The position numbers and the translations under genes are program-made. Below are positions 929-58,163 of a stretch of 64,000 bases of DNA, piece after piece. The notes beneath the pieces are model-generated. The model worked only from the letters and a program-made list of their open reading frames with translations. It was not told where the DNA came from and did no database searches. Origin of the DNA: Rhodosorus marinus CCMP1338 (Eukaryota; Plantae; Rhodophyta); assembly GCA_029953675.1 (NCBI GenBank), contig JAMWBK010000004.1, positions 1,178,001-1,242,000 on the forward strand, given 5' to 3'. The stretch's first letter is position 1, and every line of letters starts with the position of its first letter.

Positions 929-1544
929 TGCTGACTATCTCAGCTGACAGCAGTCCGTTTCTAACTATCCCGTTTTCCTAGCGCTATATGGGTTGAACTT
1001 CAAAACTCGAGAAAGTCTTCCAAACACGCACAAGTCTCATCTTGTGCTGACTTGTTTCTACGAATATTCCGCAGATCATGTGGTCCGAAATACAACTTGT
1101 TACTCCTAAATTCCATCTGATTGTCACGTAATAATGCTATTCTGGACTGTACACAAATAATATTTCTTAAATAATTAACAGATATCAATATCAGAATACT
1201 CAAAATAAAGTGGCGACACTTAAAAAATTGAAAGCATCCTCACCCCAAGAAAGGAATTACACCTTTCTGTCCCTAATCAGTCTGTCAGCAAAGAAGCAGT
1301 TTTTGGTTTCGTGAGGGTGTATGGTGCTGGCTTTTGGTGGTTTTGAGTCGCAATTGTGTTCTTCGGTGGGAGGCGCTTCTTTCTGCAGCCTTTCCCCCGC
1401 ATCTTCTAGTGGTGTGGTGCGTGCTGGGGGTTGCTAGCGCCCCTTGGAGGTCGTGGTGGTTTTTCTTTGGTTGCAAACGTTGGGAACAAGTTCTCTTTTT
1501 GGGGGTTTCGTGGGGGAATCGGTTTTTCACACCTTCCAATCGTT

Positions 1545-5800: not shown

Positions 5801-5978
5801 GGTACCCCTGATCATTGAGTGCTTTGGGTTCATGGACTCTGTTGGTTCTCGCTGGCTTCGGGAGTTGTTCCGCGAACGCCCTGACCGTCTTCAATCGTTG
5901 TTTACCCGCTTAAGTTTCCTGCTGTGGCGCATGAATGCCGCTTTGATGTTGGAGGCGCGAGTACTTCGCCGCGCTTAG
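2836..5978 (+). CDS. Family A ORF2: reverse transcriptase plus CCHC finger and RLE (PD-D/ExK) endonuclease, with one frameshift near 3105
   Basis: GVQQGDPLSP, AYHDD, LPLRLGGLG, CPLC...HLLASC, RRH, ADL...YVDLAV. The ATG at 2836 overlaps the ORF1 stop (ATGTCTGA). The frame changes at ttctttttcccc. Confidence 0.9.
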
Positions 5979-6109
5979 TCTTTTTTTCCCCTCGGGTTTT
6001 TTTTTTTTTTCAGCCTCCGATTAAACCATTCATTCAATCAGTCTGAGATCAGCATCCACATCTTCCAAAACAACACGGTCTACGATGCTACCCTTAAGCG
6101 GACAATTGT

Positions 6110-10203: not shown

Positions 10204-10342
10204 ACCCGCTGAAAACGCCTCAAGCTTGAACTGACTACTGCTCAGCTCCAAACGGTTGTTATCCCAATCGAACGATCACACCGCGCTTTTCTACCTGAGA
10301 ATCTTCGGTGCTACTAATCTTGCACTCGACTAAGCGCCACTG

Positions 10343-11930
10343 CCACTAGTAAAGTCCAGTAGACACCAGTCCAGTAAAGCCATTCAGCACCTACCCGACA
10401 GCATGCTGCAATCGGCCTGCTTGCTTTCCGGCTTTTGTGCCGGTCCCAGACTCAACTACTGGTTGCGCAGCCTGCCTCCAGCTTGGGGCTCGTGGATCGC
10501 GGCTAAAGCCGACGAGATGACCCTGCAAAACTGGGGAACGCTCTTGGATGAGCTCCTCGATCTTGAAGCTGCTCCCGACAGGGACTTGATTCGTGCACAG
10601 ATCGCTCTACCGTTGCGATTAGGGGGATTCGGCGTCGCAGACCGTGGGCTGGTATGCTCGCGAGCGGCGGTTGCCTCCTGGGCTACCGCGCTGCGAACGT
10701 TGGTGACCTTCCAGATGCGAAGTGCCTGCCTCTTGGCTCGAGCTTTGACCAACGAGGATCCAGTGACCCTGCCGCCCCCGCTTTTGACAATTTATGATGG
10801 TCTTCAACACGCGTTCAGGAGGTGCTACGCCGTGCCGGACGCAAATCGGTCCCGCTTTCGTTCCTGGAGGGAGCTGATATGGGGACGAGCTGAAGCGTTT
10901 GAGGATTCTCCCCTCGACCGAGTTCTTGCCGATGACGGAGAGGCTAGCCCCGGGTCACCTGTTGCAGACTACCCGGGTTTGAGCCGATTGTGGAGCTCCT
11001 GCACTGATGTGATTCAACATAGCCTCACCTGTGGCCAACACAGTGCCGCTCACACAGTCATGCTCAATTCTCCTTTCACGCCGCCTACCACTGCCGCTCG
11101 TCTCCGCGGCATGGCAGGCCACCTCTCTCACTTGTGGTTAACCACTCTACCGTCGTCATTGAGTCATCGTCTCGATGCTTTCCAGTTCCGTTCTGCCGCA
11201 CGGATCTATCTCGGTTTGCCACAGGCTCCGTGGCACTCTAATCGGCCGTCTTTCTGTCAGGGATGTGAGAGCCGGATTGACGCTTGTGGCTACCACTTCC
11301 TGGGTTCCTGCGGACTGTTGAAAGGTCTCCGTACGAGGCGTCACACTCGCCTCAAGTACATCCTCAGCGAATTTTTGACTCGGATAGGGCATACGGTTGA
11401 GGTTGAGTCGGAACTGCCCAGATCAATCTCGGACTCTGCACCGCCCCGTTGTATAGCCGATCTCCTCGTCTCCGACGCTGCTGCCAGACGCTCAACATAT
11501 GTGGACCTTGCGATTACCTGCCCCGTGGCCAGCGCCCACCTCACCGCAGCCGCCCGCCGCCGGGGGGCCGCGGCTTCAGCCCTTCGAAGAGTTAAGGAAC
11601 GACGGTATGCTGAGAGCATGGCCAGTCTGCCTTGCGCTGAGGGTCGCTCTCACCGGTTCCAGCCATTCATTGTGGAAAGCTTTGGTCACGTCGATATGTC
11701 GGGTTTAGAGTGGTTGCGGAAATGTTTTGCTGAGCATCCTACGGAATATTTGGCGCTCTTGAGGCGTTTAAGTGTCTCCCTTTGGCGATATTCCAGCGAC
11801 ATGCTTTCCGAGGCGCGCCATCGGCGCCTGGGGTTGTATGCTTCCCTGCCTAGTTATTAGTTCATCTTCACGCCTTGCGTAGCGCTTCAGGCTATGCTAG
11901 TAAAGTCCAGTAAAGTCCAGTAAAGTCCAC
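10343..11930 (+). mobile_element. 5'-truncated RLE non-LTR retrotransposon, 'family B'
   Basis: Open 485-aa frame (10403-11860) homologous to the A ORF2 C-terminal half (RLNYWLRSLP, LPLRLGGFG, CQGC...HFLGSC, RRH, ADL, YVDLAI). ~38-nt 3' UTR, then (AGTAAAGTCC)x3. Confidence 0.93.
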
Positions 11931-12080
11931 TGAATGAGCACATTTTGTTAGCTTTTTACTCACTGTAGCGAAATTTTGGTGTGCATTTTTTGCTGGAATG
12001 GCGCATTCGTTGAGCATCCGGTAAATTCTGGATTTAGATTGGTGAAAATATACACAAAATGGACGTTGGGATTTGTTGGG

Positions 12081-12510
12081 CTTTACTGGACTTTACTGGA
12101 TTTTACTAGCATAGCCTGAAGCGCTACGCAAGGCGTGAAGATGAACTAATAACTAGGGAGGGAAGCATACAACCCCAGGCGCCGATGGCGCGCCTCGGAA
12201 AGCATGTCGCTGGAATATCGCCAAAGGGAGACACTTAAACGCCTCAAGAGCGCCAAATATTCCGTAGGATGCTCAGCAAAACATTTCCGCAACCACTCTA
12301 AACCCGACATATCGACGTGACCAAAGCTTTCCACAATGAATGGCTGGAACCGGTGAGAGCGACCCTCAGCGCAAGGCAGACTGGCCATGCTCTCAGCATA
12401 CCGTCGTTCCTTAACTCTTCGAAGGGCTGAAGCCGCGGCCCCCCGGCGGCGGGCGGCTGCGGTGAGGTGGGCGCTGGCCACGGGGCAGGTAATCGCAAGG
12501 TCCACATATG
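12081..12510 (-). mobile_element. 5'-truncated family B copy
   Basis: ORF 12146-12529 matches the B C-terminus. Tail repeats at 12081-12107. Likely 9-bp TSD ggatttgtt on both sides. Confidence 0.92.
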
Positions 12511-12884
12511 TGCTAGGATTTGTTTGCATCGATCGAAGTGAAATTTGGAGACAGATTCTATGCCCCTAAGATTAGTTTGATAAGCGACGCCGCTTGAGCT
12601 CCTTTCTCTTCGTTCTCTTCCTTCCCAAAGCCTGCTTCGTGAAGGTCCGCCAGTTTTTGTCTTTCAGTAATGCTGGCTCTCCGGTACTTGTAGTCGTCGG
12701 GCCCCGTCAGCTTGAACCATCTCAGGAAACATGTGACAGAATCCATACTCTTTGCTTTGTTTTCATCATCAGGCAAATTCTGGATTTAGATTTTGTTTTA
12801 TATCACAAAATGCATATTGGGAGTCTTTTCATACATCGAAGTGAAAACAGGGTACAGAGCCTGTATACTATATGAAGAGAATCT

Positions 12885-13215: not shown

Positions 13216-13319
13216 AGATAAAGCAACTCCTGTGCAGGTATGGTCAGGCAATTTTGTCATTTCCCATCACCCGATTCAAAAAAATTTGGTGCAAGTTATT
13301 TATTCAAGTATGCTCATAA

Positions 13320-14729
13320 CTAGTTCCGTATAATCCCAGCAATGTCACCATATAGTCCCAATATTAGGGCCGTCAGTCCAAACATGATTATTACCACGCT
13401 AAGTGCGGTGAAAAGATGCTCCTTTCCCTTTCTCTCTCTAGCAAACGCATAAATATCAATACCCGCAGGCCAAAGCATCATGGTCTGAGAGGCAATCAGA
13501 GAAGAAATAAGAGCTAGATAGATCTTAAAAGATGGAATTACAGTATTCACAAGGGTTTCTAGCACAACCACGATGAGGGCCCATAAAAACCACCACAGCA
13601 ATGCCGCAGGTTTCAAACTCGTCAGTTTTGCAACCTTGTATGGACCGTTGTCTTTGCCAAAAACAATTCGTTTAACAAACGGTTCAGCAGCCCTCTGGAC
13701 CCCAGAAATCAGCACTTGACCCGTCACAATTATCGCAATCGCTGCGTGTATAACAACACAAACATCGGCTACGATCGCAGCTGCTCCTGGCTGAAGCGAG
13801 TTCGTGAATGGAGATACCAGCCACGTCGCATCTCCCGCAAGCCCGTACACTACAGAGCCAGTAGTCGCGTAGAACAGGTACGCAAAGGTCTGAGAAAAGA
13901 CCAACGAGTATGGAAAATTCTTAATAAACTTCATCGCGCTCATAATCTCGAGGAATACGACCGCACCGGCAAACGCGTACAGAATATCCATTGCAGCGAT
14001 TACGCAATCTGATGTTCCATAATACGAAAACAGTACTCGTTGCCCGACCGGATACGCTACTGGATCCTTCACCATGCTCGCAATCACGAAGAAGGAAATT
14101 ACAACTGGAATAATGATAGTCGCAATGGCGATGACAGAAGTGAACGCCATTGCCTTGAAGCTCCTGAGCTGCAATACAACAAGAGAGACGAATCCAGCGA
14201 TGACCATCCACTCTGTGAGAGATACGGTGGATCCGCTGAAAAGTGCACTCCATGCTTGAGCCTGTGTGTAGCTGAACGCGGCGGAGTACAAGAATAGGAG
14301 TGGATATGTGTTGAATCGAGCAAAAACCAACCCCTTCTTCCCAAAGGCACCGTTGAACAATTCCGGGTACGAATGCACTCCTTCGTACTTCTGGTATCGC
14401 AAGCGCCAAAGAAGGAAACCCGCACACATCGAGAGCACCCAGCACAGCAAAAGAGTAAGATGTCCTGGTATCCATCCTAGAGTCGCGAAAGCGTTTGGAA
14501 TGCTCAACACTCCCGTACCAACCATATCCACGACCAGCAAAAACATTGCAAGTGCAACACTCAGATTCTCGCAGGTATCATCTACGGCGTCTCCGCTCTC
14601 GATGTCTTTCCTATGTTCCACTGCTTCCTTCAAGTCATTAAGCGAGTCATCGGTGACACTGGCCACGTCCACAACGACGGCGCTCTTGAAGGTACACTCC
14701 TCACCAAGCCTAGAATCAACTGATGCCAT
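13320..14729 (-). CDS. Amino-acid permease (AAAP/Aa_trans family), copy 2, 469 aa, intronless
   Basis: Long multi-TM ORF with VGTGVLSIP..F..LGW..G and FAFAGAVVFLEI.S.MK-type motifs. Confidence 0.92.
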   Translation of the reverse strand: MASVDSRLGEECTFKSAVVVDVASVTDDSLNDLKEAVEHRKDIESGDAVDDTCENLSVALAMFLLVVDMVGTGVLSIPNAFATLGWIPGHLTLLLCWVLSMCAGFLLWRLRYQKYEGVHSYPELFNGAFGKKGLVFARFNTYPLLFLYSAAFSYTQAQAWSALFSGSTVSLTEWMVIAGFVSLVVLQLRSFKAMAFTSVIAIATIIIPVVISFFVIASMVKDPVAYPVGQRVLFSYYGTSDCVIAAMDILYAFAGAVVFLEIMSAMKFIKNFPYSLVFSQTFAYLFYATTGSVVYGLAGDATWLVSPFTNSLQPGAAAIVADVCVVIHAAIAIIVTGQVLISGVQRAAEPFVKRIVFGKDNGPYKVAKLTSLKPAALLWWFLWALIVVVLETLVNTVIPSFKIYLALISSLIASQTMMLWPAGIDIYAFARERKGKEHLFTALSVVIIMFGLTALILGLYGDIAGIIRN

Positions 14730-15044
14730 TTTTCTGCACTATTTTCATTCACAATATTTCTCAGTTACTGATGACGTCCTAAACAGGAGGCCAGACTTCA
14801 ACGCTGATGAGGTGTGACTATAAATCCTCTTCGTGAGAAGTTCGCATAGCATGTTCCTTGCCGAGTTCACCGTTGTGTCCATGTAGAGAATAGCTGATTG
14901 GATCTATCGCAAGCCTACGAAATCCCGAAATAGCACAAAAGTACTCATAGCTCTCCGGGAAGGAGCGCAAAGCGATCAGCTCATTGCGAGCGCTCACTGC
15001 CGCGAGCTAAGCGCATATTGATTGAACATGTGTGTCTTGTCCAC

Positions 15045-15061
15045 TGGACTGGACTTTACTT
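15045..15061 (-). mobile_element. 17-bp tail-only family B micro-insertion
   Basis: tggactggactttactt flanked by a 10-bp TSD tcttgtccac (15035-15044, 15062-15071). Confidence 0.75.
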
Positions 15062-16802
15062 TCTTGTCCACCGAGTCCATATCTTTATAAATCGATGGGG
15101 TTTCTCGAGAAGGTGAGTGGACTGCTAACTATTTCAGCAGACAATAGTCCATACCTAGCCATTTCCTCTGCTCTGTATGTTTTGAACTTGGGAACTCGAG
15201 AAACTCCTTCAAACCCCGCCTTCAATGCTGCACAAGTCCAGTTCTTCTTCTCCTAACTTGTTTCTACTATTATGGAGCAGATCATTTAGTCTGACATACA
15301 ACTTCTTGCTGGAGTTATCAGGCATGCAGGATCTAGCACCACGTTGTGTATCCAGGGGGGTACTTCAATTGTTGTGCCCGAACCCCTTCGTTTCGGAGGT
15401 TGTTTGTGAAGTATCCACAGCTAGTAACCCAAGACAAGGGCAGTCGAAGTGCAGCAAAAAAAACGATCATAATATTACTGTAAACGATACGCCCAATCAG
15501 AATAGTATTGTCAACTGCATTCCCATTCAAAACCAAACCTTCTCGCAGTCCACGCCAGTCCAAAAATATATACTAGACAAAATGCTCGTTTTCTCCGAGG
15601 AATGGTTTCTATTCGTAGAAAGGACCCGGGGAGAAATCAACAATGCCCCGAAGGCGATATCCTAGGCAACATCATAGCTGAAGTAGACTACCACCGCCTT
15701 TGTTTGCAGGTTTTACTGCCTCATATCTAGATCAGATTACTCCCACGCGGTCCGATTAAGTCTGAGTTACTACAACCACTACCACCTCCCGAGGGAGAAA
15801 AAAAAAATCGCGTCCCCTCAAACGTTGAAAAAGCGTTTATACGCCGCATGAGAATTCGGTTAAACGGCGAGGAGAGCGAGTCGAGGCTCTCACGGAACAT
15901 TTCGCAGTGCATATCTCTTGGTGTTAAAGCGCACGAAGAGTACCAGTGATGCACTGCGGTACGCAACTAACTGCTGAATAAAGTTTTCCTGCTAGAGCGC
16001 ACAAATAGTGCTCGTTGTTCGCTGCCCTGGGTAGCTGCTGAATAAAGGGTTGAACAGATCTGACTAGTTAATGGATATAACACGAGCTGTCAGCCTCTCC
16101 AAAAGAGAGCAAAGAGGTATCAGCCCCTCCTAAACAAGTCAAAGAGCTGTCAACGAGCAGCTAGGCAAACCCACCACCAACCGAGAAAAGTCCTGAATTT
16201 TTCTCCGTTCACGCTCGGAGAATTACTCGAAATACGATACGACGACAATGTCCCTTTTCACGCGAATATTGTTTTGCGCAACTTTTAAAGCAGTAGCTTA
16301 AAATAGTATGACGGGCCCAAGGGGAAAGGAACAACTGGAGAAAAACTTCAATACCGCGGCATCTATAAAAGTACTCTGAAACGGCAAAATATGCGATTAA
16401 GACCCTTTCTTTTTCACGAGCATTGTTTTTTAACAAAATTTGCTGTGGGAGCTTAAAATAGCTTTTTTCTAATTGATCCAGGAGAATGGGGCAATGAGGC
16501 ATGCCCCATTAAAGGGGCCAGCCGCATTACTACGGAAAAGCTGTCGATGGGTCACCCTCTCTTTTTAAGTTTACTTAATACATGTGGAAAGGCTGTCCCA
16601 GTTCTATACGCCCCCATACTACAAAATACAATATATTGAGCTTATTCTTACAAGGAAAAAAAGCTTTGATTGCAGGTTGCCAATTGAACTATTAAACTGA
16701 AACGTATTAGACTGGCAATAGGTAACTAAACCAATTCGTTTCATCCGGTATGGCGGTACTTATTTTAACGGGTTCGAGGGAACTTGTGCCTTATCGGATG
16801 GG

Positions 16803-19245: not shown

Positions 19246-19364
19246 AGACCGGAGATTGATATTTTGCACTGGGCAAGTGACGGCGAGGTCATCATATTCA
19301 CAGTGTGGGTCGCACTATCCAAAAATATTAGTCCAACGGATTTATTCGGAAAGTGTACTAATAG

Positions 19365-20774
19365 CTAGTTATCTATAATCCCAACAATGCCACCATATAG
19401 TCCCAATATTAGGGCCGTCAGTCCAAACATGATTAGTACCACGCTAAGTACAGTGAAAAGATGCTCCTTTCCCTTTCTCTCTCTGGCAAACGCGTAAATA
19501 TCAATACCCGCAGGCCAAAGCATCATGGTCTGAGAGGCAATCAGAGAAGAAATAAGAGCTAGATAGATCTGAAAAGATGGAATTACAGTATTCACAAGGG
19601 TTTCTAGTACAATCACAATGAGGGCCCATAAGAACCACCACAGCAACGCCGCAGGTTTCAAACTCGTCAGTTTTGCAACTTCGTATGGACCGTTGTCTTT
19701 GCCAAAAACAATCCGTTTAACGAACGGTTCAACGGCCCTCTGGACTCCATAGATCAGCACTTGACCCGTCACAATTACTGCAATCGCTGCGTGTATAACA
19801 ACACAGACATCGGCTACGATCGCAGCTGCTCCTGGCTGAAGCGAGTTCGTGAATGGAGACACCAGCCATGTCGCATCTCCCGCAAGCCCGTACACTACAG
19901 AACCAGTAGTCGCGTAGAACAGGTATGCAGAGGTCTGAGAAAAGACCAACGAGTATGGAAAATTCTTAATAAACTTCATCGCGCTCATAATCTCGAGGAA
20001 TACGACCGCGCCGGCAAAAGCGTACAGCATATCCATTGCGGCGATTACGCAATCCGATGTTCCGTAATACGAAAACAGTACTCGTTGCCCAACCGGATAC
20101 GCCACTGGATCCTTCACCATGCTCGCAATCACGAAGAAGGAAATTACAACTGGAACAATAATACTCACAATGGCGATGATAGAAGTGAACGCCATCGCTT
20201 TGAAGCTCCTCAGCTGCAGTACAACAAGTGAGATGAATCCAGCGATGACCATCCACTCCGTGAGAGATACTGCGGATCCGCTGAAAAGTGCACTCCATGC
20301 TTTAGCTTGCGTGTAGCTGAACGCGGCGGAGTACAAGAATAGGAGTGGGTATGTGTTGAATCGGGCGAAAACCAACCCCTTCTTCCCAAAGGCACCGTTG
20401 AACAATTCCGGGTACGAATGCACTCCTTCGTACTTCTGGTATCGCAAGCGCCAAAGAAGGAAACCCGCACACATCGAGAGCCCCCAGCACAGCAAAAGAG
20501 TAAGATGTCCTGGTATCCATCCTAGCGTCGCGAAAGCGTTTGGAATGCTCAACACTCCCGTACCAACCATGTCCACGACCAGCAAAAACATTGCAAGTGC
20601 AACGCTCAGATTCTCGCAGGTATCATCTACGGCGTCTCCGCTCTCGATGTCTTTCCTATGCTCCACTGCTTCCTTCAAGTCATTAAGCGAGTCATCGGTG
20701 ACACTGGCCACGTCCACAACGACGGCGCTCTTCAAAGTACACTCCTCACCAAGCTTAGAATCAATTGATGCCAT
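19365..20774 (-). CDS. Amino-acid permease (AAAP/Aa_trans family), copy 3, 469 aa
   Basis: Co-linear and highly similar to copy 2. Confidence 0.92.
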   Translation of the reverse strand: MASIDSKLGEECTLKSAVVVDVASVTDDSLNDLKEAVEHRKDIESGDAVDDTCENLSVALAMFLLVVDMVGTGVLSIPNAFATLGWIPGHLTLLLCWGLSMCAGFLLWRLRYQKYEGVHSYPELFNGAFGKKGLVFARFNTYPLLFLYSAAFSYTQAKAWSALFSGSAVSLTEWMVIAGFISLVVLQLRSFKAMAFTSIIAIVSIIVPVVISFFVIASMVKDPVAYPVGQRVLFSYYGTSDCVIAAMDMLYAFAGAVVFLEIMSAMKFIKNFPYSLVFSQTSAYLFYATTGSVVYGLAGDATWLVSPFTNSLQPGAAAIVADVCVVIHAAIAVIVTGQVLIYGVQRAVEPFVKRIVFGKDNGPYEVAKLTSLKPAALLWWFLWALIVIVLETLVNTVIPSFQIYLALISSLIASQTMMLWPAGIDIYAFARERKGKEHLFTVLSVVLIMFGLTALILGLYGGIVGIIDN

Positions 20775-22857
20775 TTTTCTGCACTATTTTCATTCACAAT
20801 ATTTCTCAGCCACTGATGCCGTCCTAGACAGCAGGTCAGTCTTAAACGCTGATGAAGAGTGACTATAAATCCTCTTCGTGAGAAGTTCGCATAGCATGCT
20901 CGTTCCGGAGCTCGCTATTGTGCTCTGCGGGGAATAGCTGATCTCATCTACAGGAAACCTGCAAAATCCCGAAATAGCACCCAAGTATTCATAGCGCTCC
21001 GGGAAAGAGCCCGAAGTGATCAGCCCATTGCGTATGCTTACCGCCGTGAGCTAAGAGCATATTGGTTTAACTTGCTAGTCGCAATTGGCGGGTTCACATG
21101 TTTGTCAATCAATGGAGTTTATTGACAACATGAGTGGACACATGTTTATCAATCGATGGAGTTTCTTGATAAGATTCGTGGACTGCTAACTATCTCAGCC
21201 GACAGCAGTCCATTTCTACCTATCACGTTTTCCTAGCGCTATATGGGTTGAACTTCAAAACTCGAGAAAGTCCTTCCGAGCACGCGCAAGTCTCATCTTG
21301 TGCTGACTTGTTTCTACGATTATTCCGCAGGTCATGTGGTCCGAAATACAACTTGTTGCTAGGGTTACTAGGTGCGTAGGATCAAGCACCACGTTGTGTC
21401 AAGGGGGTTACTTCAGTTGCTGTGCTCCAAACCTTTCGTTGCGAGGGTTCTTCGTGGAATATCCACAGCGAGCAAAGCCGAAATTCGAAGTGCAGCAAGA
21501 ACCCAATCATAATAGAACTGTAAACGGTACGCCCAATCAGAATACCACTGTAACTCTGCGTCCAATCAAAAGCCAACCTCTCAGCAGGCCGTGTCAAGGC
21601 CCAAAAATATATATAATAGACAAAATGTTCGTTTTCTCGGAGGAACGTTTCTATTCGGAGAAAGAACCGAGGGAGAAAACAAAAATGGTACTGAAGGCGA
21701 TCTGCTAGCAGCATATTAACTGAGGTTGGTTTACCGGCGTCTTGGTTTGTATGTTTTACTGCCTTATGTCTAGTTTGCATTACTCCGTACCGCTTACGAC
21801 TGTGGCAGTAAACTACCACCACCACAACTAAAGGAGAAAATCGCGCGGTCTCCAAAACTGAAGCAGCGTTAATACGCCACGTGTGATTTCATTCATTCCT
21901 TCCATTAATACGGCACAACAGGAAACTTAAACGGATAAACTGCGAGGAGAGCCGGTCGCGTCGGCGGAACACCTCTCGCAATGCATTTCCTTTGGGGTGG
22001 CAAAGCCCGTGAGTGATAGCTTGTATGTTTTCATTCGAGTGCTAGTGGTGCGGTGCGTTGTGCGTTTTATTCAATAGACCTTCGGCTTTAGGTCATCGTC
22101 TGGTAGCTTTCTCAATTTAGTGTTTTGGCTTTATGGACTCCGTTGGTTGCCATTGGCTTCGCGAATTGTTCCTCTGAGCATCCCACACATGCTTTCCTCG
22201 TTTTCAACCCGTTTAGTCTTTCTTCAGTAATCTTTCTTCAGTCTCCAAATAGACACGTTCATTCGTGCTATGTAACGGCCGAATAAAAGTTTGCTGCTAG
22301 AGCAGACATAGTGCTACCAGTGCCCTGCGCGAGGTAACTGCTGAATAAAAGCTACAGGGTTGCTCAGATCTGACGAGCTTATTGGTTAAAACACGAGCCG
22401 TTTAGCCGTTAGCCTCTCCGAAACAAAGCAAAGGTTTCAGTCCCTCCAAAACAAGCTAAAGAGCTGTCAGAGGGAAGCATTGCAATAGAAAAATTTCCAC
22501 TTCTCCAGCTGGCGAAAATTGTTCTCTAAAATAGGATATGTACTCAATGAAAATGCTTTTTTACGTAATTTGCTGTAGGAGCTTAAAATAGAAACACGTG
22601 CCCTTTCGGAATGGAGAACTAAGAGAGAAAAATGCTGAAGGTCGGCATTTTTGGAAAAAGTACTCTAAAATGAGATATGGGGCGAGGCCCGTTTTTCAAA
22701 CAATCGTTGTTTTTAACCAATAATTTTTGGAAGAGCTTAAAATAGAATAACGGGCCCCCGGGGGCAATGGGGCAGCGAAGCATGCCTCATTAAAGGGGGC
22801 AGCCATACGGTAGTGTAAACTTTCGATGGGTCATAGTTGATTTTCTGGGCACAATGA

Positions 22858-30597: not shown

Positions 30598-31090
30598 ATA
30601 GATCTACTGTCCATCGGTTTTCGGAAACCGCATCACACAAAAAAGTCAAACCCGAATCAACCCAGAACTGTTGGTTGATAAAAAAAAGACCATCCATCTA
30701 AAAACAGCAAGGGGCTCGTCTAGGTTGGATGCTGAAGAAATTCGTAAGACGATCGGTTGACCAGTCTGTATCATTCAGTCAATATCAGCTGTCGGAAGTG
30801 GCGTTTTGTTTTTCGTTTGGGGTATACTTTCGTGAAGCTTCCTGGAAGGACCGTTGCGAGTTTGCCCTCGGCTACCTGAGGGCAGAGTATCCGAGAACGA
30901 ATTGAGCAACTGAACTCAACTCTTTGCATCCAAGCCTCTCTGCATTTCGGCAATACGCGAATGGGTTTGTTTCGCCAGCGTACTCATCGGATGGATAGAT
31001 GGGTGGATGGCACGCCTATCTCGCCATTCCCATCGATAGTCCCCGAACTGCAGCGAATATAGTCTTCTTGGCTCGGAGTAACTTCAATCT

Positions 31091-31265
31091 TGACGTGATC
31101 CTCATAGAATCGACGGTGTCCCGATTTGCACTAGGAGCAGGGTAAGTCAGCCTTGACGAGCTCCTCGTAGAATCGCGGAATCCCGAATTGCACTAGGAGC
31201 AGGGTAATTTCAGCCTTGCGTGCTCCTCATAGAATCGAGGAATCCCGAATTGTACTAGGAGCAAG
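31091..31265. repeat. ~62-bp tandem repeat x3 inside a probable decayed gene on the minus strand
   Basis: cctc(a/g)tagaatcg...cccga(a/t)ttg(c/t)actaggagca three times. Minus-strand units read LLLVQFGIPRFYEE in shifting frames. Confidence 0.8.
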
Positions 31266-33896
31266 GTTTTCTTGGTCAGTCATTTCCCCGTCCAACCCCC
31301 GGGGATCCAGACACCATGCGAATAGTGGATTTCAGCCACGATATCGTTGACCTTCCGCTTGAGGAGCGCTACTACGTCCGATCGCCGTTCGTGATTCGCA
31401 ATGAACCAGACTCAACGAAGTTGAATAGCCGGGCCCACGGGAGTGCTACATAGCCTGGATGAATCGTTCTCGTCTCCGCCAAAGCTTAGACCAGAGTCAG
31501 TGATTGGCCCATCCAGTACATGGTGTCCATAGTCCTCCATAACAGCTCATCCAAGAGAATTGTCTGAAGCTTCTCCATGGACTTCATCTTTCGGAATTTC
31601 TGCTACAGGACGGAGCATTTGATCCATTCCTCGATCTTGAGCAGCTGCCCGAATACAACCAATAGCGAGTACCACCTGGTGACTGTTGTGCAGCCACACT
31701 GCAATAGCTTGCTTCCCCGTGCTTGTGGCAATGTCCTTCCGGAGAGCGCTGCTTCTTCGGATCATCTTCGCCACGTGAAATGAACTGTCCGAAATCTCTC
31801 CGAACTTTCCTACTTTGACCATGACTGCTCGGACAAGAAGGTTGGTCTGATGAGCCAAACAAGTACCTACGCGAACACAAATCCAAATTCAATACCTCAA
31901 ATCTGTAATCCAAAGTGTTCGTAACGAACATACGTCTCGAAGAGAGGGCGAACTAGTCATCAAGTAATAAGCCAGCACCATAAGAACGAGGTTTACCATC
32001 GACAAGTACGTAGCTGGAAACAGTACTTTCTAAACATAATTTAATCGGCTACTAAACAAGCGTCAAAGAACGATCGAAAGAGTTATCCTATCCGTGCGCT
32101 GCGAAATTGCTTATTTGCGATTAACCCTCTCCCGTAGGACTCCACGACCAGTCGCCTCGCCTTGTCGGTCGTAAGGCCGACAATAGTCCCTCTACCTGCC
32201 TGATTGTCTCGAGAATATCCTTCGACAGCTTCTCTGCTGTTGCAGTAACAGGAGAGGAATGCAAGTCCGGCAGACAGAGTTGCCCATCTTCCCTCACACT
32301 GGCCACGCTAAGCGTGCTCACCAGCGACCGTTGTCCAACCATCCACCACGATTGTGCATTTCTTGGGACTGTTCAGGAAGCCTGCCAACTCCTTTTCGCC
32401 ATTTCCAACAAGCTGTCCAGTGTACTACCCGCGAGTGTATGCCTATCCGGTATCGCCGCGTCGAACTGAAAACCCGTTGCCTAGTCCCGAAAGTAAGGGA
32501 AGTTTGCAACACTACACCCAGAAACGGACGCAAGTGGGTCAGCCTCCAGAACGCAACAATTAGTTCCCGCGCTATCCCTCTCTGTATGGGAATTGCCGAG
32601 TGTGAGCCAAGGATTTGTAGGGATTGGAGCAAGTTTAGTTAAACGAAACAATCCCCATAGTCAGGGTCAGCAGGAGCTCTCATTCTGCTTCATTCTTTCG
32701 GGAGGGGACATCCTCCTGCAGTTAAAATTCTCTACGCCGGATTCCGAACGCATCCGTGCACGCGGAGACGCGACTCCCAGAGCCCAGTCCACCATCAGGA
32801 GGATCACGAGGGACCTCTTTTTCCTCAGCAATCACAGGATCAAGCGCGGCAGGCACAGGACCAGCAGCTGTTTTTTCGCGGGGCCGCGAGCCCGGGAAAA
32901 ATCGGCTTGCCAGCCGCCAGCCGCCAGCCGCCAGCCGCCAGCCGTGGGTGCGGTCGGCAGGGAGACTGGTACAAGATGACATCGCCGATTGGAGCTCGAG
33001 AAACAAACCGCGGGCACTTTCAGAGACGCTAGAGTAGTAAAACCACACCAGAGTGTAGATCATCGCTGGAAAGACTGAACAATATCGGAAACTAGACACC
33101 CAACGCGCTCAACGTCGGGAGGGAGGTGCCCCAAGACCCAACCACGGCCGCTGGTTGGGTAAAAGCTCGGTTAAAGAGGCCTAGACCGCCTAGTCGTAGG
33201 GGTAGGCCCACTTGGGCACGAACGATATCACGGGTGGGGCACTGAAAATGACCCAACTCCTCATCTAAGAAATATACCAGCTCTCCAAAGCTCTCGTCGT
33301 CGGCACGGGTTGCTAGCCACCGGCCCAAGGGAGTCGGGAGCGAGCGGAACCAATAGGTGAGCCGCTGACCGCAACAATATCAGTACAGCAACAACGAAAA
33401 TAGCAAGAAGCCGCGAGGCAGCCGACCGAGCTCCGAGACCAGTTGCCGGTGTTTTCTCAGAATTTGCGGCAACACACCCTCCACAAACGACGCGGACCCA
33501 CAGAGGGTGCCCAGGTGGACAAACCCTGCCCGGCGCAAATATCCCGGAAACGCGCGGGGTCCTGCTGCTCTTGAATATCCACTCCTCCCCAGTAGAACGA
33601 CTTCGCATGATTGACTTCGAGATCGACGAGGGATGCCAGTGTGTGGAGACGATCGTCAGCCACCGCGAGGGTATCTGGAGGCTCAATGAGGCAGACATCA
33701 TCGTGGCAACCCACTGTGCGGACCTCCGGGAACTCTGAACGCAGGCTAAGCAAAACGACCTGAAGCCCACACGCGGGCAAAAAAGACGCCAACGGGTCAC
33801 CCTGTTGAACCCCGGTCCGCGACTCGAGGGAGTGCGAGGAAGGGCCGAGGGGTGCCATAAGTTGTCCCTTGACCCATCAAAAGAGAAAAGGCTACT

Positions 33897-34095
33897 GGAC
33901 TGGACTTTACTAGACTTGGACTTTACTGGACTTTACTAGCATAGCCTGAAGCGCTACGGGGGAAAAGTCGCTTGCGCGACGAAAAAAATTCTTGATGCGC
34001 GAGTGTTGGTAGCTAAGCCCGGTCTCCTTTAGTAAAAAGCGAAAAGAGAGTTCGTACAAGACAGAGCTACCTCGCGGACTTTACTAGCATAGCTG
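33897..34095 (-). mobile_element. Chimeric retro-insert: B 3' stub + U5 snRNA copy + B 3' end and tail
   Basis: 10-bp TSD aaaggctact at 33887-33896 and 34096-34105. Removing the insert restores continuity of the host A-like sequence. Confidence 0.85.
33967..34075 (-). ncRNA. U5: U5 snRNA copy (retro-pseudogene)
   Basis: Minus strand has the stem UCUCUUUU/AAAGGAGA closing the 11-nt loop CGCUUUUUACU (canonical CGCCUUUUACU). It also has internal-loop ACGAAC and CCG, outer helices GGUAGCU/AGCUACC and GCGAG/CUCGC, an Sm-like AAUUUUUUUC, and a 3' hairpin GUCGC-GCAA-GCGAC. Confidence 0.85.
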
Positions 34096-34508
34096 AAAGG
34101 CTACTAACAAAGGGAAAAGCTGCCGGGAAGACCTGGCGCACCACATGCTTAATGGCCGGTCGAGAGACACGATTAAAACCAATACTAAAGTCGACAGATA
34201 ATAACCCGTAATCCGGTGAGTAGGCCAGATCCCGAAGAGGCATGGATAGCAATTCACCGCCGCCACGATAGCCCACGCCCAACTGCGCGTGTCCAAAAAA
34301 GCGACGGGATTCGGGGACCAAAATCTGGACCAACTATTGACATTGGATCAGGTCCTATTCCGGCGAAGCGACCTGAAAATCAGCTAAGATGATTTTGTTC
34401 GAGGAAGGAATGAAACAACAAAGCGGAATTGAGAGTTACCATTACACTCGGGCGCGTAAAACTATGTTCGTACATCGATTATCACGTAGTTGAAATTAAC
34501 CCCCGGAG

Positions 34509-35719: not shown

Positions 35720-36728
35720 CGCCTGGTACCACTGGTCATTGAGTGCTTTGGGTTTATGGACTCCCTTGGTTCTCGTTGGCTTTCGGGAGTTGTTCCGCGA
35801 ACGCCGTGACCGTCGCTAATCGCTGTTTACCCGTCTAAGTTTCTTGCTGCGATTACATGCCCTGTGGCAAGCGCCCATCTGACGGCTGCCGCCCGCCGCC
35901 GGGGAGCAGCTGCTTCGGCCCTTCGCCGCGTGAAGGAACGACGGTATACTGAGAGTATGGCCAGCCCGCCTTGAGCTGAGGGTCGCTCCCACCGGTTCCA
36001 GCCTTTCATTGTGGGAAGCTTTGGTCAGGTGGAGAAGTCGGGTTTGGAGTGGTTGCGGAAATGTTTCACTGAGCATCCTGTTGAATACTTAGAACTTTTG
36101 CGGCGCTTAAGTGTCTCTCTGTGGCGATATTCGAGCAGCATGCTTGCCGAGCCGCGCCATCGGCGCCTGGGTTTGCACGCTTCCCTACCTAGTTCTTAGC
36201 TCCTTTTCACGGTTTGCGTAGCGCTGTAGGCTATGCTAATAAAGCCAGTTTCTTGCTGTGGTGTATGAACGCTGCATTGATGTCGCGATCTTCGCCGAGC
36301 TTAGTCCTTTTTTCCCCTCGGGGTTTTTTCCGTTAGTCTCCGCTTGAACAAATTCGTTCGATTCCCCAACCAAGTCGGTGGGGATAACGACCCTCTTTTT
36401 GCACATTTCCCCACCTAGGGGTAAGCAGTATCGAAAAACTCTTCCCATTTGATCCAGCCCTACTGACCGTCCTTTTCATTCACTGACCGTCTGTCCAAAC
36501 GTTTTTTTCCCGCTTAAGTTTCTCGCTGCGGCGTATGAACGCTGCTTTGATGTTGGAGGGGCGCGATCTTCGCCGCGCTTAGTCCCTTTTCTTTCCCTCC
36601 GGGCTTTTTCTTCAGTCTCCGATTAAACCAATTCATTCACTCACAGTGTGAGTGGACTATCCAAAAGTTTTGGTGCAACCTATTGTTCCGTCTGCGTAGC
36701 TGTTCAGGCTATGCTAGTAAATCCATCC
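35720..36728 (+). mobile_element. Pile-up of short A-like and B-like 3' fragments
   Basis: A-like pieces at ~35720-35850, 36240-36360 and 36500-36640. B-like pieces at ~35860-36245 and a ~35-nt stub at 36693-36728. Confidence 0.75.
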
Positions 36729-36776
36729 ATTTATTCGACTTGCAAACCACCACCATTTATTCGGAAACGTACACAA

Positions 36777-38186
36777 CTAGGTTTGTATAATCCCAACAAT
36801 TCCACCATACAGTCCCAATATAAGGGCTGTAAGTCCTAACATGAATATTACCCCGCTAAGTACAGTGAAAAGGTGCTTCTTTCCCTTTCTCTCTTTGCCA
36901 AACGCATAAATATCAATACCCGCAGGCCAAAGCATCATGGTCTGAGAGGCAATCAGAGAAGAAATAAGAGCCAGATAGATTTCGAAAGATGGAATAGCAA
37001 TATTCAAAAGGGTTTCTAACACAACAACAATGAGGGCCCATAAGAACCACCACAGGAACGCTGCAGGTTTCAAGCTCGTCAGTTTTGCAACCTTATATGG
37101 AGCATTGTCGTTCCCCAGAAAAAGCCGTTTAACAAACGGTTCAGCAGCCCTCTGGATCCCATATATCAGTATTTGACCCTTAATTACAATCGCAATCGAT
37201 ACATGTATGACAACGCAAACATTGGCTACGATCGCAGCAGCCCCTGGCTGAAGCGAGTTCGTGTATGGAGACACCAGCCACGTCGCATCTCCCGCAAGCC
37301 CGTACACTGCAGAACCAGTAGTCGCGTAGAACAGATACGCAAAGGTCTGAGAAATGACTAACGAGTATGGAAAATTCTTAACCAACTTCATCGCACTCAT
37401 TATCTCGAGGAATACGACCGCACCGGCAAAAGCGTATAGAATGTCCATTGCGGCGATTACGCAATCCGACGTTCCGTAGTACGAAAACAAGACTCGCTGC
37501 CCGACCGGATACGCCACTGGATCCTTCACCATGCTCGCAATCACGAAGAACGAAATTCCAATTGGAAGAATGATAGTCACAATGGCAATGATGGAAGTGA
37601 ACGCCATTGCCTTGAAGCTCCTGAGCTGCAGAACAACGAGAGAGACAAATCCAGCGATGATCATCCACTGCGTGAGTGATACAGCGGATCCGCTGAAAAG
37701 TGCACTCCATGCTTGAGCCTGCGTGTAGCTGAACGCGGCGGTGTACAAGAATAGGAGCGGGTACGTGTTGAATCGGGCAAATACCAACCCCTTCTTTCCA
37801 AAGGCACTGAAAAACAATTGCGGGTACGAATGCCCTGATTTGTACTTCTGGTGTCGCAAGCGCCAAAGAAGGAGACCGGCACACAGCGAGAGCCCCCAGC
37901 ACAGCAAAAGCGTAAGATGTCCTGGTATCCATCCAAGCGTCGCGAACGTGTTTGGAATGGTCAGCACTCCCGTACCAACCACATCTACGACAAGCAGAAA
38001 CATTGCAAGGGCAACGCTTAGATTTTCGCAGGTCTCATCTACGGTGCCTCCACTCTCGATGTCTTTGGTGTGCTCCACCGCTTCTTTCAACTCATCGAGC
38101 GACTCATCGGGAACGCCGGCCTCGTCCACAAGGAAGGTGCTCTGCACAGCACACTCATCCGCGAGCTTAGATTCAACTGATGACAT
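36777..38186 (-). CDS. Amino-acid permease (AAAP/Aa_trans family), copy 4, most diverged
   Basis: Co-linear with copies 2 and 3. The ATG at 38186 (MSSVES) corresponds to the MAS start. The track start at 38204 is a GTG. Confidence 0.92.
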   Translation of the reverse strand: MSSVESKLADECAVQSTFLVDEAGVPDESLDELKEAVEHTKDIESGGTVDETCENLSVALAMFLLVVDVVGTGVLTIPNTFATLGWIPGHLTLLLCWGLSLCAGLLLWRLRHQKYKSGHSYPQLFFSAFGKKGLVFARFNTYPLLFLYTAAFSYTQAQAWSALFSGSAVSLTQWMIIAGFVSLVVLQLRSFKAMAFTSIIAIVTIILPIGISFFVIASMVKDPVAYPVGQRVLFSYYGTSDCVIAAMDILYAFAGAVVFLEIMSAMKLVKNFPYSLVISQTFAYLFYATTGSAVYGLAGDATWLVSPYTNSLQPGAAAIVANVCVVIHVSIAIVIKGQILIYGIQRAAEPFVKRLFLGNDNAPYKVAKLTSLKPAAFLWWFLWALIVVVLETLLNIAIPSFEIYLALISSLIASQTMMLWPAGIDIYAFGKERKGKKHLFTVLSGVIFMLGLTALILGLYGGIVGIIQT

Positions 38187-39719
38187 TGCACTATTTTCAT
38201 TCACAATCCTCCTCAGCTACTGACGCCATCTTAGATAGCAGGCCAGGCTTCAACGCTAATCGGGAGTGCCTATAAATCCCCTCTGCGAGAACTTCGCTTA
38301 GCATGTTTCTTGCCTAATTTGCTGCGGCGCCTCTTCGAATAACCCGTTCTCGTTTGTTGATCCCAGTTACCGCAAGTCAGGCCTGAAAATTCTCGAAATA
38401 GAACCAAAATACTCACCGCGCACTTGGAAAAGACCCGAGAAGAAAGATCAGCCCCATCGCTTGTACTCGCCTCCTCGCGCTAAAGACGTTGATGCCCAGC
38501 GAAGCTATAGTTGAATGAATGGTTATAGTTAGGGTTGTCATAAAACCGTCCGATTAAAGGCTCCCGGATGCGTCCTATTAAAACAAAGAAAACATAACCT
38601 GGAATGAATTAGGGCAGTCATAAAACGTCCGATAAATTTTATCAGACAACTACGGGAAGTTCATCTATATGTAATAAACAAAAACATTTCGTGCGTAATT
38701 CATAAAACTATTTCAAAAAATGTCTGGTATTGTCTTTTATATAACAGTTCTCCCGTGATTTGCCCTAGAGGGCACCTGAATTCTGTTAGTTCGAGTTCCA
38801 TGTTAAATCTACTAACAGCCGTACTAGGTGTCTTATTGGACGTCACGAGCCTAGCAAGACGCAACCAATCGATAGAGTCTGAAGGAGGCTTAGCAGGCAG
38901 TTGCTGCGGAGCTCTGACAGGGGTCCAACAAGTGTTTTTTTTTTCTTCAATTTCTTCACCAAGCAGTAAAGCTAGTGCAGGAACCTCTGCAATCTTGAAC
39001 TTCAAAACTCGAATACTCATCTAAAACACACCCCCATCTTGGGTTGAACCGCTTAAACTACAGAGTAAATAATGGTGGAAGTTCCGGTTCCATTTAGGAA
39101 TTCCAACAGATCATATCCACCGACATGTGCAACTCGATGTTGGGGTCACCACGTGAGCAGGATTTAGCAGGACTGTACACGTCTCGTGCTGTGCGAAAGC
39201 CCTAAAATCTGATTGAGAGTTCGCTATGGGATATCACTGATATCCCATGAACGTAGCTGATAATATCAGCTACATTGAGCGCACAGTCCGTGGTTGACAC
39301 TAAGTTTGAAGATCTACTGATTCTGTTTACAGAAAAAGCCTGGATTTGCAAAGAGTCCAATCGAAATACTTCGGCAAGCCATACATCCAATCATAATCTA
39401 AGATTTACGTTTCTCACGAACATCTAGGTATATATATATACTAAACATTACCCAATCTATATCTCTGACGTGTTTTATTGGATCACAAACTGTCAGCTTC
39501 TTCAAAAAACAAATTAGCAAGCTCTGAGGTCAAGCAAAATAGAAAATTACCCTGAAATGGTATTTTCGAGCAGTATGCTCAATAGGAGCGTCCATTTCGT
39601 TTTTCACAAGTTTTGGTCACGGAGCTTAAAATATAACTTGGCAAACAAGAGCATGCAAATTGGACATTTTGCCTTGCTGGATTTAGCTGCGGTCGCGGAT
39701 GGGCTGCGGCAGCTCAAGT

Positions 39720-40583: not shown

Positions 40584-41119
40584 TACTCTGCAACGGGATT
40601 CGCTTCAAGATCGCATTAAAGACGCCTTCTCATACGAATAAAAAAAAAAAGAAGCAAAATCTTGATGTTTCGAACGACGATATACATGGACGAACATTCA
40701 TGGACAAAGAGCACTGTAACGAGTAGATAAGGAGCGCCTTTCTTGAAGATGTAGGAAGTTAGTAAAACCAACACCGGGGGGGGGCAGACTAGCCGCTAAT
40801 TTCTCGGCAAAGGTATCCTAACTATAACAGCCAGTAGTTGATCCTTTATGTCCATGAGTGATCCAAACCCTTCACGAAGATATGGATAGTGCGAGAAGTA
40901 AGCTCAGGACAAGAACACTGCGGGGCAAAAGAGCGGCGACTGCGTGTTATTGTTCGGGATCTTGAGCATTCCATAAAGAATTCTCAATTTTACCGCTGTC
41001 ACGGGCTATCACAACCTGGATTAAGGATACCACCACGTCTGGTTTGTCGGAGGCGGGAATACCTATGCCCAAGTCCGAACTTGGCCCAGCGGTAAAGTAG
41101 CGCGGCCTTAGCTGGTTTT

Positions 41120-41990
41120 TGCTAGCATAGCCTGAAGCGCAAGGCGTGGACTGTAACTAAGAAGTCGGGAGAGAAACATGCAAACCCAAGCGCGGATGGC
41201 GCGCCTCGGCAAGCGTGCTTCTAGAATATCGCGACAGGGCGACACTGAAATTCCATAAGATGCTCAGCAAAACATTTCCGCAACCACTCCAAATCCGACT
41301 TATCCACGTGGCCAAAGGTTTCCACAGCGAAAGGCTGAAACCTGTGAGAACGACCATCAGCGCAAGGCAGACTGGCCATACTCTCAGCATACCGTCGTTC
41401 TTTCACTCGGCGAAGGGCCGAAGCGGCTGCTCCTCGGCGAAGGGCCGAAGCGGCTGCTCCTCGGCGACGGGCGGCCGAGCTGAGATGAGGGCTGCACAGG
41501 CATGTGGTCGCGAGGTCCACATATGCTGAGCGTCTGGCGGCAGTATCGGAGACGAGGAGATCTGCGATGCAGCGAGGCGGTGCCGTGTCCGAGACCGATC
41601 TGGGCAGTTCCGATCCCACCTCAACCGTATGCCCTACCCGAGTCAAAGATTCCCTGAGAATGTACTTGAGGCGAGTGTGAGGCGTCGTACGAGGACCTCT
41701 CAACAGTCCGCATGAACCTAAGAAGTGGTAGCCACACGCGTCAATCCGACTCTCACATCCGTGACCGAAAAACGGCCGATTAGAGTGCCACGGAGCTTGT
41801 GGCAAACCCAGGTAGATCTTTGCGGTGGTGCGGAGCTGGAAGGCGTCGAGACGGTGTCCCAGTGACGAAGGCAAAGTGGTTAACTACATCTGCGATAGAT
41901 GGCCTCCCAGGCCGCGGAGGCGAGCGGCAGTGGTAGGCGGTGTGAAGGGAGAGTTGAGCAAGATTGCGTGAGCTGCACTGTGTTGGCCTC
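41120..41990 (-). mobile_element. Older B-like copy with an internal 27-bp duplication
   Basis: ORF 41221-41874 aligns with B (GCESRIDACGYHFLGSC, CIADLLVSD). RRGAAASAL occurs twice. Confidence 0.88.
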
Positions 41991-43384: not shown

Positions 43385-43466
43385 ACCAAGAGTGGGATTC
43401 GAACCCACATCCTTAGAGGTTGGATGCCTCAGCCCTCGCCGCCTTTGCCCAGTACTCCAGATACCG
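43385..43466 (-). other. tRNA-like remnant: intact T-arm, degenerate remainder
   Basis: GTGGG-TTCGAAT-CCCAC at 43392-43408 followed by T runs, plus an A-box-like TGGAGTACTGG. Acceptor and anticodon stems do not pair well. Confidence 0.3.
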
Positions 43467-57387: not shown

Positions 57388-57797
57388 CCTCGAAGATCTC
57401 CCCGTACGCGATTTGCGGGACTGGTTGACCTCGCCCGAGCCGGTCTTCTCTGATGAACTCATTAATCGCTGCTTGGCGGTTCCAGAAATGTCAGCCTGGA
57501 AGGCAAATGCCATTTTAATTCTCAAGCTACTTCATCCAACTGGAACCCAAAACCGTTTGCATGTACGTCCCGAGCATATTCTGCTTCATGCGCCAAGCAC
57601 GGTTCGTTTCGTTCGGATCTCGACCAGTGAAGGTCCGGGTGAAGAAGACGATTGTATGTCATGAACGTGGTCCAGCTGAATGACCATCAACTGTGTGCTG
57701 TCTTCAAGAGGCAAGGGCTCTGCTAGACGACATGCGAGATTACGAATCTGGCAGCCTGTTTCATGAGAGGAACTGTTTTGAACGACAAAACTATGAC

Positions 57798-58163
57798 GAC
57801 GGGTGGGTTCCTTGGACCCTGGTGTGGGTACTGCTCTAAACGAGGTCCCCAGGGATGACCGTGCAAATGTTGAACGGCACCGTCAGATTGGTGGACAAAT
57901 CTGGAGGTGCTTATGCAAATAATCGGAAAGGAGGGCAGGAATCCAAGTAGCGGACTGAGAGATGCGTGTAACGGGAACTAAACGACAGGTGGTTCCTTGG
58001 ATCCTGGTGTGGGCACTGTTCTCCGCAGGTCCCAAGGGATGAGCGTCAAATATTGGGCAGCATCGTCAGATTTGGTGGACAGATCTGGAGCTGTTTATGC
58101 AACTCTTGGGAAAGGAGGGCAGTAATCCAAGTCTGAGCGATGCGCGATGTAACGGGAACTAAA
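57798..58163. repeat. Diverged ~185-bp tandem duplication (57798-57983, 57984-58163)
   Basis: Shared blocks ggttccttgga.cctggtgtggg, ggtccc.agggatga, cgtcagatt, gaaaggagggcag.aatccaagt and tgtaacgggaactaaa, with indels between them. Confidence 0.85.

Follow-up and report, generated by a model that had tools for sequence, protein, structure and literature searches.

How a complete U5 small nuclear RNA (snRNA) came to lie between two retrotransposon 3′ ends is the question raised by a locus in the nuclear DNA of Rhodosorus marinus, a unicellular red alga of the class Stylonematophyceae with a 31-Mb nuclear genome (GCA_029953675.1; PMC10250338). The stretch analyzed, termed the window, comprises 64 kb at about positions 1,178,001–1,242,000 of contig JAMWBK010000004.1; all coordinates are those of the window unless a locus is named, and the composite is given in minus-strand orientation. 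The DNA surveyed came to 128 kb with three more R. marinus loci (L007–L009, 64 kb), reached via amino-acid-transporter paralogs. In all likelihood the block is a chimeric retrocopy of U5 that was mobilized by a family of non-LTR retrotransposons, here called family B, and that landed within a degenerate copy resembling a second such family, A.

The composite consists of a 209-bp block with a perfect 10-bp duplication, AGTAGCCTTT, on both sides (10/10 match). In the sense direction, the first copy of this target-site duplication (TSD; 34096–34105, minus strand, as are all parts of the block) is followed by a 20-nt piece, CAGCTATGCTAGTAAAGTCC (34076–34095), which matches the 21 nt at the end of family B apart from one missing G. 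Next comes the U5 core, which base-by-base parsing places at 33967–34075 (109 nt), within a full-length match to the Rfam U5 model RF00020 at 33965–34078. The core is separated from the next B-derived part by TTTTCCCCC (33958–33966; TTTT-CCCCC). The CCCCC (33958–33962) is a junction filler of 4–5 extra nucleotides, as its last C may be part of B; it resembles neither the U5 model nor the sequence found upstream in B (TTGC), and it is compatible with what may be non-templated addition by an R2-type reverse transcriptase (RT; PMC8594491). It is followed by the family-B 3′ module, GTAGCGCTTCAGGCTATGCTAGTAAAGTCC (33928–33957), the last 30 nt of B, which is identical to the B copies at 30/30 positions and includes most of the hairpin GCGUAGC/GCUUCAG/GCUAUGC together with the first tail unit. 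An irregular tail, AGTAAAGTCC AAGTCT AGTAAAGTCC AGTCC (33897–33927), in which AGTAAAGTCC is the tail unit of other B copies, leads to the second TSD copy (33887–33896), identical to the first. At their 3′ ends, five B copies of the window (e.g. at 11879, 35038, and 26828) carry the identical 30-mer, whose 18-mer core occurs eight times in the 64 kb as against no occurrences expected from shuffles. The initial annotation of this DNA, made from the letters alone, had read the block in this same order, and its boundaries proved exact; the sense-strand junction of U5 to a B 3′ module and tail that it proposed is borne out by the 30/30 match and the AGTAAAGTCC repeats.

The block interrupts a degenerate family-A-like retrotransposon copy at 32746–34333 (minus strand), delimited by a tblastn search with the intact A protein and by self-BLAST. 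The pieces of this host align with residues 224–311 of the A protein at 34333–34073 and with residues 309–425 at 33870–33520, with more extending to 32746, at 48–72% identity. An intact family-A open reading frame (ORF) of 954 amino acids with RT, CCHC, and an RLE-like C terminus (RLE, restriction-like endonuclease) lies at 3114–5978 on the plus strand and supplied the empty-site reference, at about 4015–4030. When the block is deleted and one TSD kept, the flanks are collinear with this paralog across a gapless junction, at 74% identity, so that the insert interrupts RT coding sequence; the break falls at the codons that correspond to 'FVSRLY' in the intact paralog, and the insert has the same orientation as the interrupted RT ORF. 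The paralog carries a single AGTAGACTTT at this place, and the empty site is thus paralogous, not allelic. The perfect TSD and the empty site in the paralog establish the insert as a product of retrotransposition, as had been claimed for it. No promoter-like sequence lies directly upstream of the U5 copy, where a B tail and A RT coding sequence are found instead.

The identity of the snRNA is secure. The RF00020 score of 61.4 bits exceeds the gathering threshold of 40, with E = 8e-8 over the whole window and 8e-10 when the local region is taken by itself, and U5 is the sole Rfam match in the 64 kb. The match runs untruncated over model positions 1–117, so that the copy is complete, as first described, at both ends, with the Rfam alignment beginning no more than 3 nt from the junction of B and U5. 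The loop I sequence is CGCUUUUUACUA (34041–34030), and the Sm site AAUUUUUUU at 33990–33980 is followed by the 3′ stem-loop GUCGCGCAAGCGAC and then by UUUU. The minimum free energy fold is at −32.7 kcal/mol (z = −2.6), and 26 of the 30 base pairs of the model are standard; two of the four non-standard pairs are common to the red-algal U5 on contig L002, described below, and the other two lie at the base of the 3′ stem-loop.

Loop I, with CGCUUUUUACU, differs from the consensus by one C-to-U change, the copy carrying GCUUUUUAC versus the C-bearing form GCCUUUUAC; the U5 loop I consensus is YGCCUUUUACY (PMC6461891), and the Cyanidiophyceae are reported to retain the invariant loop (bioRxiv 10.64898/2026.05.17.725761). 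A metagenome collection was scanned with a stem-loop pattern bearing Y at the variant position, so that neither base was favored. Two matches were obtained, both with U, on contigs L002 (1–300) and L003 (7209–7508) of GCA_013332695.1, and these U5 genes score 53.4 bits each with RF00020. Their U5 sequences are identical and their neighboring genes differ; upstream they have in common two blocks, one with a TATA at −60 to −1 and the other at −125 to −85. The conserved upstream blocks and differing neighbors indicate that the two look like real, dispersed U5 genes.

Infernal alignments, preferred over a poor MAFFT alignment, were used to compare the window U5 with this pair. The sequences are 67% identical over the Rfam columns, and six compensatory pair changes were counted with no one-sided breaks; the loop is the same, as are two non-canonical pairs. 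By its sequence and predicted pairing, the window copy is an undecayed image of a U5 of functional type. Because the same change occurs in two promoter-bearing U5 genes, the U of loop I is better regarded as a lineage variant than as decay. The initial annotation had taken the loop as the lineage's own sequence, and it is very likely that GCUUUUUAC is the true loop I sequence of R. marinus. GCUUUUUAC would then be present in at least two red-algal lineages, within a loop usually called invariant, which is of interest to splicing research.

Some further observations concern these two contigs. One of the conserved upstream blocks contains TTTGTATAAATACC, and both contigs stop exactly at the U5 3′ end, like an assembly break at a repeated gene. 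The U5 gene of L003 lies about 180 bp upstream of a Nep1/EMG1 gene. The L003 Nep1 is 62–66% identical to those of Gracilaria, Gracilariopsis, and Agarophyton, 57% to that of Porphyridium, and 48–50% to that of Rhodosorus, which identifies the source of the contigs as another, distantly related (uncultured) red alga. No U5 was found through Nep1 synteny on the relatives' contigs L004 and L005.

The element that supplied the ends of the block belongs to a family whose copies are 5′-truncated to lengths from about 26 nt to >1.5 kb, are 98–99% identical to one another, share one 3′ end, and terminate in a (AGTAAAGTCC)n tail, with TSDs of 7–10 bp. The longest B copy in the window, itself 5′-truncated (10367–11929, plus strand), provides a C-terminal ORF of 485 amino acids with CCHC, the reference 3′ end, and a (AGTAAAGTCC)3 tail. 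The 7-bp hairpin GCGUAGC/GCUUCAG/GCUAUGC stands directly before the tail; it found no folding support (z of −0.3 to −0.7) and no covariation, related families varying only in the loop. Two B 3′ ends, at 11495–11929 and 12077–12511, form a facing inverted duplication, 99.3% identical and ∼150 bp apart, which could reflect rearrangement or twin insertion. Diverged B-like families have a common core, GCTTCAGGCTATGCTAG, and tail units AATAAAGCC, AGTAAATCC, AGCAAAAACC, AGTAAAACCA, and AGTAAAAGCC; such ends were seen in the window at 36218–36249, 36696–36722, and 41117–41143, and at L007:3568–3587 and L007:7681–7700.

The class of the mobilizer was assessed largely through family A, as A and B are 37% identical over about 490 amino acids. 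The A ORF matches Pfam RVT_1 (E = 7.6e-11), and in a comparison with all solved structures the best matches are R2 proteins (RT, E = 1e-12), with LINE-1 (L1; LINE, long interspersed nuclear element) ORF2p next. The CCHC-RH stretch of A aligns collinearly to R2 proteins, with weak domain E-values. The CCHC is at residue 756 in A and at residue 285 in B; in both, it lies beyond the RT on the C-terminal side and ahead of a stretch that contains RH. No endonuclease Pfam domain (APE, apurinic/apyrimidinic endonuclease, or other) was matched in A, and a homolog search with the A protein, in a collection that held no R. marinus transposon proteins, gave nothing above 34% identity. These comparisons support the assignment of A and B as R2-like, RLE-type non-LTR elements with a putative C-terminal endonuclease, which agrees with the RLE-type mobilizer first proposed. 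As targets, B tails and AGTA-like sites were observed rather than the spliced-leader genes that mark the CRE clade (CRE/SLACS/CZAR). Family A itself extends over 1431–6040, where the 954-residue RT/CCHC ORF is apparently intact and is preceded by a 470-residue ORF without a Pfam match. Its 3′ end, composed of a CCCCTCGGGG hairpin, a T run, and the terminus ATTCATTCA, is unrelated to the B tail, and many short family-A 3′ fragments are scattered over the window, with ends at 6486, 17089, 22855, 30596, 36639, and 43363.

The behavior of B at its targets bears directly on the origin of the block. At L007 3587→3446, a diverged B-like end, ...GCTATGTT with the unit AGTAAAACCA, is followed by a 5′-truncated B that ends ...GCTAGTAAAGTCC, after which AGTAAAACCA recurs before CCATC. 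At L007 7700→7620, a B-like end, ...GCT with the unit AGTAAAAGCC, is followed by AG-CGAATC, a 30-nt mini-B from GTAGCGC, and then AGTAAAAGCC again before AATTGG. The duplicated 10-mer at both sites equals the variant unit of the host copy and not that of the insert, which identifies it as the TSD. B therefore inserts into existing B-like tails, duplicating exactly one 10-nt unit. More B copies, at window 10340–10380, window 27380, and L007 3880–3925, likewise have a B tail at their 5′ junction. Preferential tail insertion by family B and its relatives is visible as head-to-tail stacks of truncated copies, and the first letters of B targets other than tails are A, AGT, AGTA, or AGTAAA, a pattern that would fit priming of the nicked DNA on the tail repeat.

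A free-standing mini-B of 26–30 nt is present at 40586–40557 (minus strand) in unique non-coding DNA, with CAGAGTA on both sides. The possibility that this site was a second chimera, with a 530-nt RNA, was rejected: no ORF, Rfam match, or other window copy was found for the supposed RNA, and the CAGAGTA flanks bound the mini-B. An 8-mer 'TSD', AAAAACCA, that would define a 560-nt insert was likewise discarded as being at chance level. The mini-B modules at window 33957 and L007:7662 have a common first nucleotide, the G of GTAGCGC at the hairpin base, and the module at 40586 begins there too within the ambiguity of its TSD. This recurrent start suggests a preferred stop or template end ∼30 nt from the tail. 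In two of the three mini-B cases, 4–8 unrelated nucleotides precede GTAGCGC (CCCCC; AGCGAATC or CGAATC). Tail-unit targeting and the recurrent 30-nt module together define what the B enzyme probably recognizes, and these insertion rules should be useful for the annotation of red-algal repeats and in the search for compact RT recognition elements.

From these observations, we infer a template switch, the origin of the C run, and an order of events. Target-primed reverse transcription would have begun at the tail of a B RNA and proceeded over the final 30 nt of this RNA, as far as the base of the 3′ hairpin. The addition of 4–5 G to the cDNA would appear as C in the sense strand, and synthesis would then have passed to a U5 snRNA of mature length, entering at its 3′ end and running through to its 5′ end. 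An R2-derived RT adds 2–5 non-templated nucleotides at template ends and makes serial end-to-end jumps between RNAs, with maximal jumping in excess dGTP (PMC8594491); the run of 4–5 G followed by an end-to-end copy of U5 is what this enzymology predicts. As regards the 5′ B piece, the nested insertions of L007 indicate that the 20-mer can be an earlier mini-B whose tail the chimera then hit. A 25-nt mini-B (CAGCTATGCT-AGTAAAGTCC-AGTCC) would have entered the old family-A RT gene with the TSD AGTAGCCTTT, leaving a site that would read TSD-CAGCTATGCTAGTAAAGTCCAGTCC-TSD, without U5. The chimera, U5-CCCCC-B30-AGTAAAGTCC-AAGTCT, would subsequently have entered the tail of this mini-B, duplicating the 10-nt AGTAAAGTCC. 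Under this model, the second AGTAAAGTCC (33911–33902) is a 10-bp TSD matching 34085–34076, and both the 'irregular' tail and the presence of two TSDs with an equal length of 10 bp follow from the nested history. Confidence in the nested origin of the 5′ piece is about even, and the full statement, in which it is joined to the B-mediated chimeric retrocopy, likewise stands evenly balanced. The U5 copy is promoterless, dead-on-arrival, and young.

Several points weigh against this account. The internal TSD is indistinguishable from an ordinary tail repeat, because the tail units of host and insert are identical, and irregular units such as AGTCC are also present in simple B tails. No mini-B-only allele or paralog is among the data examined, a search that took in about 128 kb of the genome. 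The template switch is itself inferred, and ligation of U5 to B RNA, or read-through, would yield the same DNA. Under either history of the 5′ piece, the RNA–RNA junction that needs explanation is U5...GCGACUUUU-CCCC(C)-GUAGCGC.

The initial annotation had envisaged a double template jump, in which a single event passed from 30 nt of B tail to U5 and then to ∼20 nt of a second B RNA. On such a model the product would have joined the target by microhomology (CTT/CAG). One perfect TSD does surround the whole block, the U5 copy extends from one end of the RNA to the other, and the 5′ B piece stops exactly where a tail unit stops (GTCC), with 0–2 nt of possible overlap with U5. In vitro, an R2-type RT jumps serially from the end of one RNA to the next (PMC8594491); in Magnaporthe, a tripartite LINE chimera flanked by a TSD has been documented (PMC2104539); and the odd tail needs no special cause, since simple B tails are irregular too. 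However, two jumps are required, and tripartite chimeras made up only 1 of 34 in the fungal survey (PMC2104539). A B tail directly 5′ of an insert arises in this genome by nesting, with demonstrable 10-bp tail-unit TSDs. The 5′ piece lacks one base whereas the 3′ module matches at 30/30 positions, which is slightly more in keeping with an older, separate insertion. The double jump is thus possible and not required, as nested insertion explains the 5′ piece at least as well, and it is regarded as a plausible, if tentative, alternative. A fusion made at the RNA level, with the 3′ end of U5 ligated to a 5′-OH fragment of B RNA (RtcB-like) and the product copied in one pass, would follow the precedent of U6/L1 chimeras, in which ligation precedes retrotransposition (PMC6789731). 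The recurrent start of the 30-nt module in three cases could then mark an RNA cleavage site, but an RT stop after the hairpin explains that recurrence equally well, and the extra CCCC(C) is left unexplained. In contrast to U6, U5 is not known to bear a 2′,3′-cyclic phosphate end, which also counts against ligation, and such a fusion is considered quite improbable.

Two further readings would give the copy a function or a family. The first, that a functional U5 gene sits between two independent B-tail insertions, has in its favor the fully intact U5 fold and a loop variant that is the genuine red-algal one. It is nevertheless highly improbable, as the whole block is missing from the paralogous site, one perfect TSD encloses it inside RT coding sequence, and a B tail abuts the 5′ end of U5 where promoter-like sequence is lacking. 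In the other, which the initial annotation had raised, U5-CCCCC-B30-tail would belong to, or have founded, a family with a U5 head that resembles short interspersed nuclear elements (SINEs) and is moved by an RLE-type, tail-targeting LINE. A mini-B just downstream of a U5 gene would give rise to read-through U5-CCCCC-B30-tail RNAs that are mobilized in trans, and the 3′ flank of the source gene would read TTTTCCCCC-GTAGCGCTTCAGG. Mini-B insertions of the exact 30-nt module do exist (window 40586, L007:7662), the copy bears the B hairpin and tail, and SINEU elements are snRNA-headed SINEs without an internal promoter (PMC4494074). Yet one copy occurs in the 64-kb window and none in the 64 kb of L007–L009, which hold at least seven B-like 3′ ends, although this 128-kb sample is far too small to exclude a low-copy SINE family in 31 Mb. 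The retrocopy has no promoter, whereas the U5 genes of L002 and L003 depend on upstream blocks, and no internal promoter is known in snRNA genes transcribed by RNA polymerase II (PMC4494074). The 4–5-nt homopolymer at the junction is, moreover, typical of non-templated addition. With no promoter carried along and a homopolymer at the junction, a one-off event is favored, and both the master-gene route and membership of a SINE-like family appear unlikely. Such a family, if real, would be without precedent as a U5-derived SINE and, outside vertebrates, as a SINE headed by any snRNA.

Chimeras of this general kind have precedents, of which the closest are the snRNA/L1 retrocopies of mammals. U6/L1 is the commonest of these, and U1, U2, U4, and U5 fusions to L1 have also been reported (PMC11838501, PMC4476161). 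As in R. marinus, a full-length snRNA in sense lies 5′ of a 5′-truncated LINE 3′ end, one TSD marks one insertion event, and the cause of the fusion is taken to be template switching or RNA ligation, the same two routes considered here. The mobilizers differ, an RLE-type element with a 10-nt repeat tail here as against the APE-type L1 with poly(A), and the R. marinus chimera is further distinguished by a LINE part of 30 nt, 4–5 extra C, an additional 5′ B piece, and a red-algal host.

Bipartite and tripartite chimeric retrogenes are also known in the fungus Magnaporthe grisea, built from MGL, WEIRD, and Mg-SINE (Gogvadze et al. 2007, PMC2104539). These join LINE 3′ fragments to abundant non-coding RNA, with chimerization points that recur at one and the same position beside predicted hairpins, and one TSD-flanked tripartite element was read as a double template jump (PMC2104539). 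The MGL fragments measure 230–5461 nt versus 30 nt here, and the third part of the R. marinus block may instead be a nested insertion. MGL is in addition a different, non-RLE LINE. Among SINEs, the SINEU families of crocodilians are headed by U1 or U2 and mobilized by Tx1 (Kojima 2015, PMC4494074). They resemble the present case in their snRNA-derived 5′ part, their sequence-specific non-LTR mobilizer, and the tandem or nested copies that sandwich a TSD, and template switching has been invoked for them as well; they are, however, multi-copy families with diagnostic deletions and master copies, whereas one copy is seen here, and a U1/U2 head with a Tx1 partner takes the place of a U5 head with an RLE element.

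With R2, families A and B share the domain order of RT, CCHC, and putative C-terminal endonuclease region, and the chimera shows end-to-end copies with at most five extra nucleotides (PMC8594491 and Eickbush-laboratory work cited there). R2 is specific for ribosomal DNA, whereas A and B are dispersed and B prefers its own tail repeats. Tail-targeting LINEs that form head-to-tail stacks of 5′-truncated copies include Zepp of Chlorella and GilM and GilT of Giardia, which are named here as a lead only. B differs from them in having a 10-nt repeat unit and in duplicating exactly one such unit as its TSD.

The novelty first claimed for the locus is accordingly narrower than supposed. Mammalian U5/L1 fusions and tripartite LINE chimeras of a fungus had already been described, while a limited literature search turned up no published chimera of this sort that involves an RLE-type element or a red alga. 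What is new here is the RLE-type, tail-targeting mobilizer, the red-algal host, and the very short LINE part of 30 nt; the kind of chimera was already known. On the account favored here, the block would provide in-genome evidence that an R2-like RT joins separate RNAs in vivo, with the signatures of R2 biochemistry (end-to-end copying and a short added run), in a red-algal lineage where retrotransposition has hardly been studied.

The window has several other features. Amino-acid-transporter genes of the Aa_trans family occupy 1–1101, 13280–15743, 19321–21786, and 36755–38314, at least three of them full copies and one partial. They are 83–96% identical and lie within segmental duplications interleaved with retrotransposon debris, and tandem paralogs are found on contig 3 (L008). 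A T-arm-like sequence, GUGGGAUUCGAACCCAC, at 43385–43415, with the T-arm proper at about 43392–43408, just past a family-A 3′ end, is not a tRNA gene, having neither an ARAGORN nor an Rfam call. Self-comparison also revealed short local tandem duplications, of 80–87% identity, at 31089–31267 and 57789–58163.

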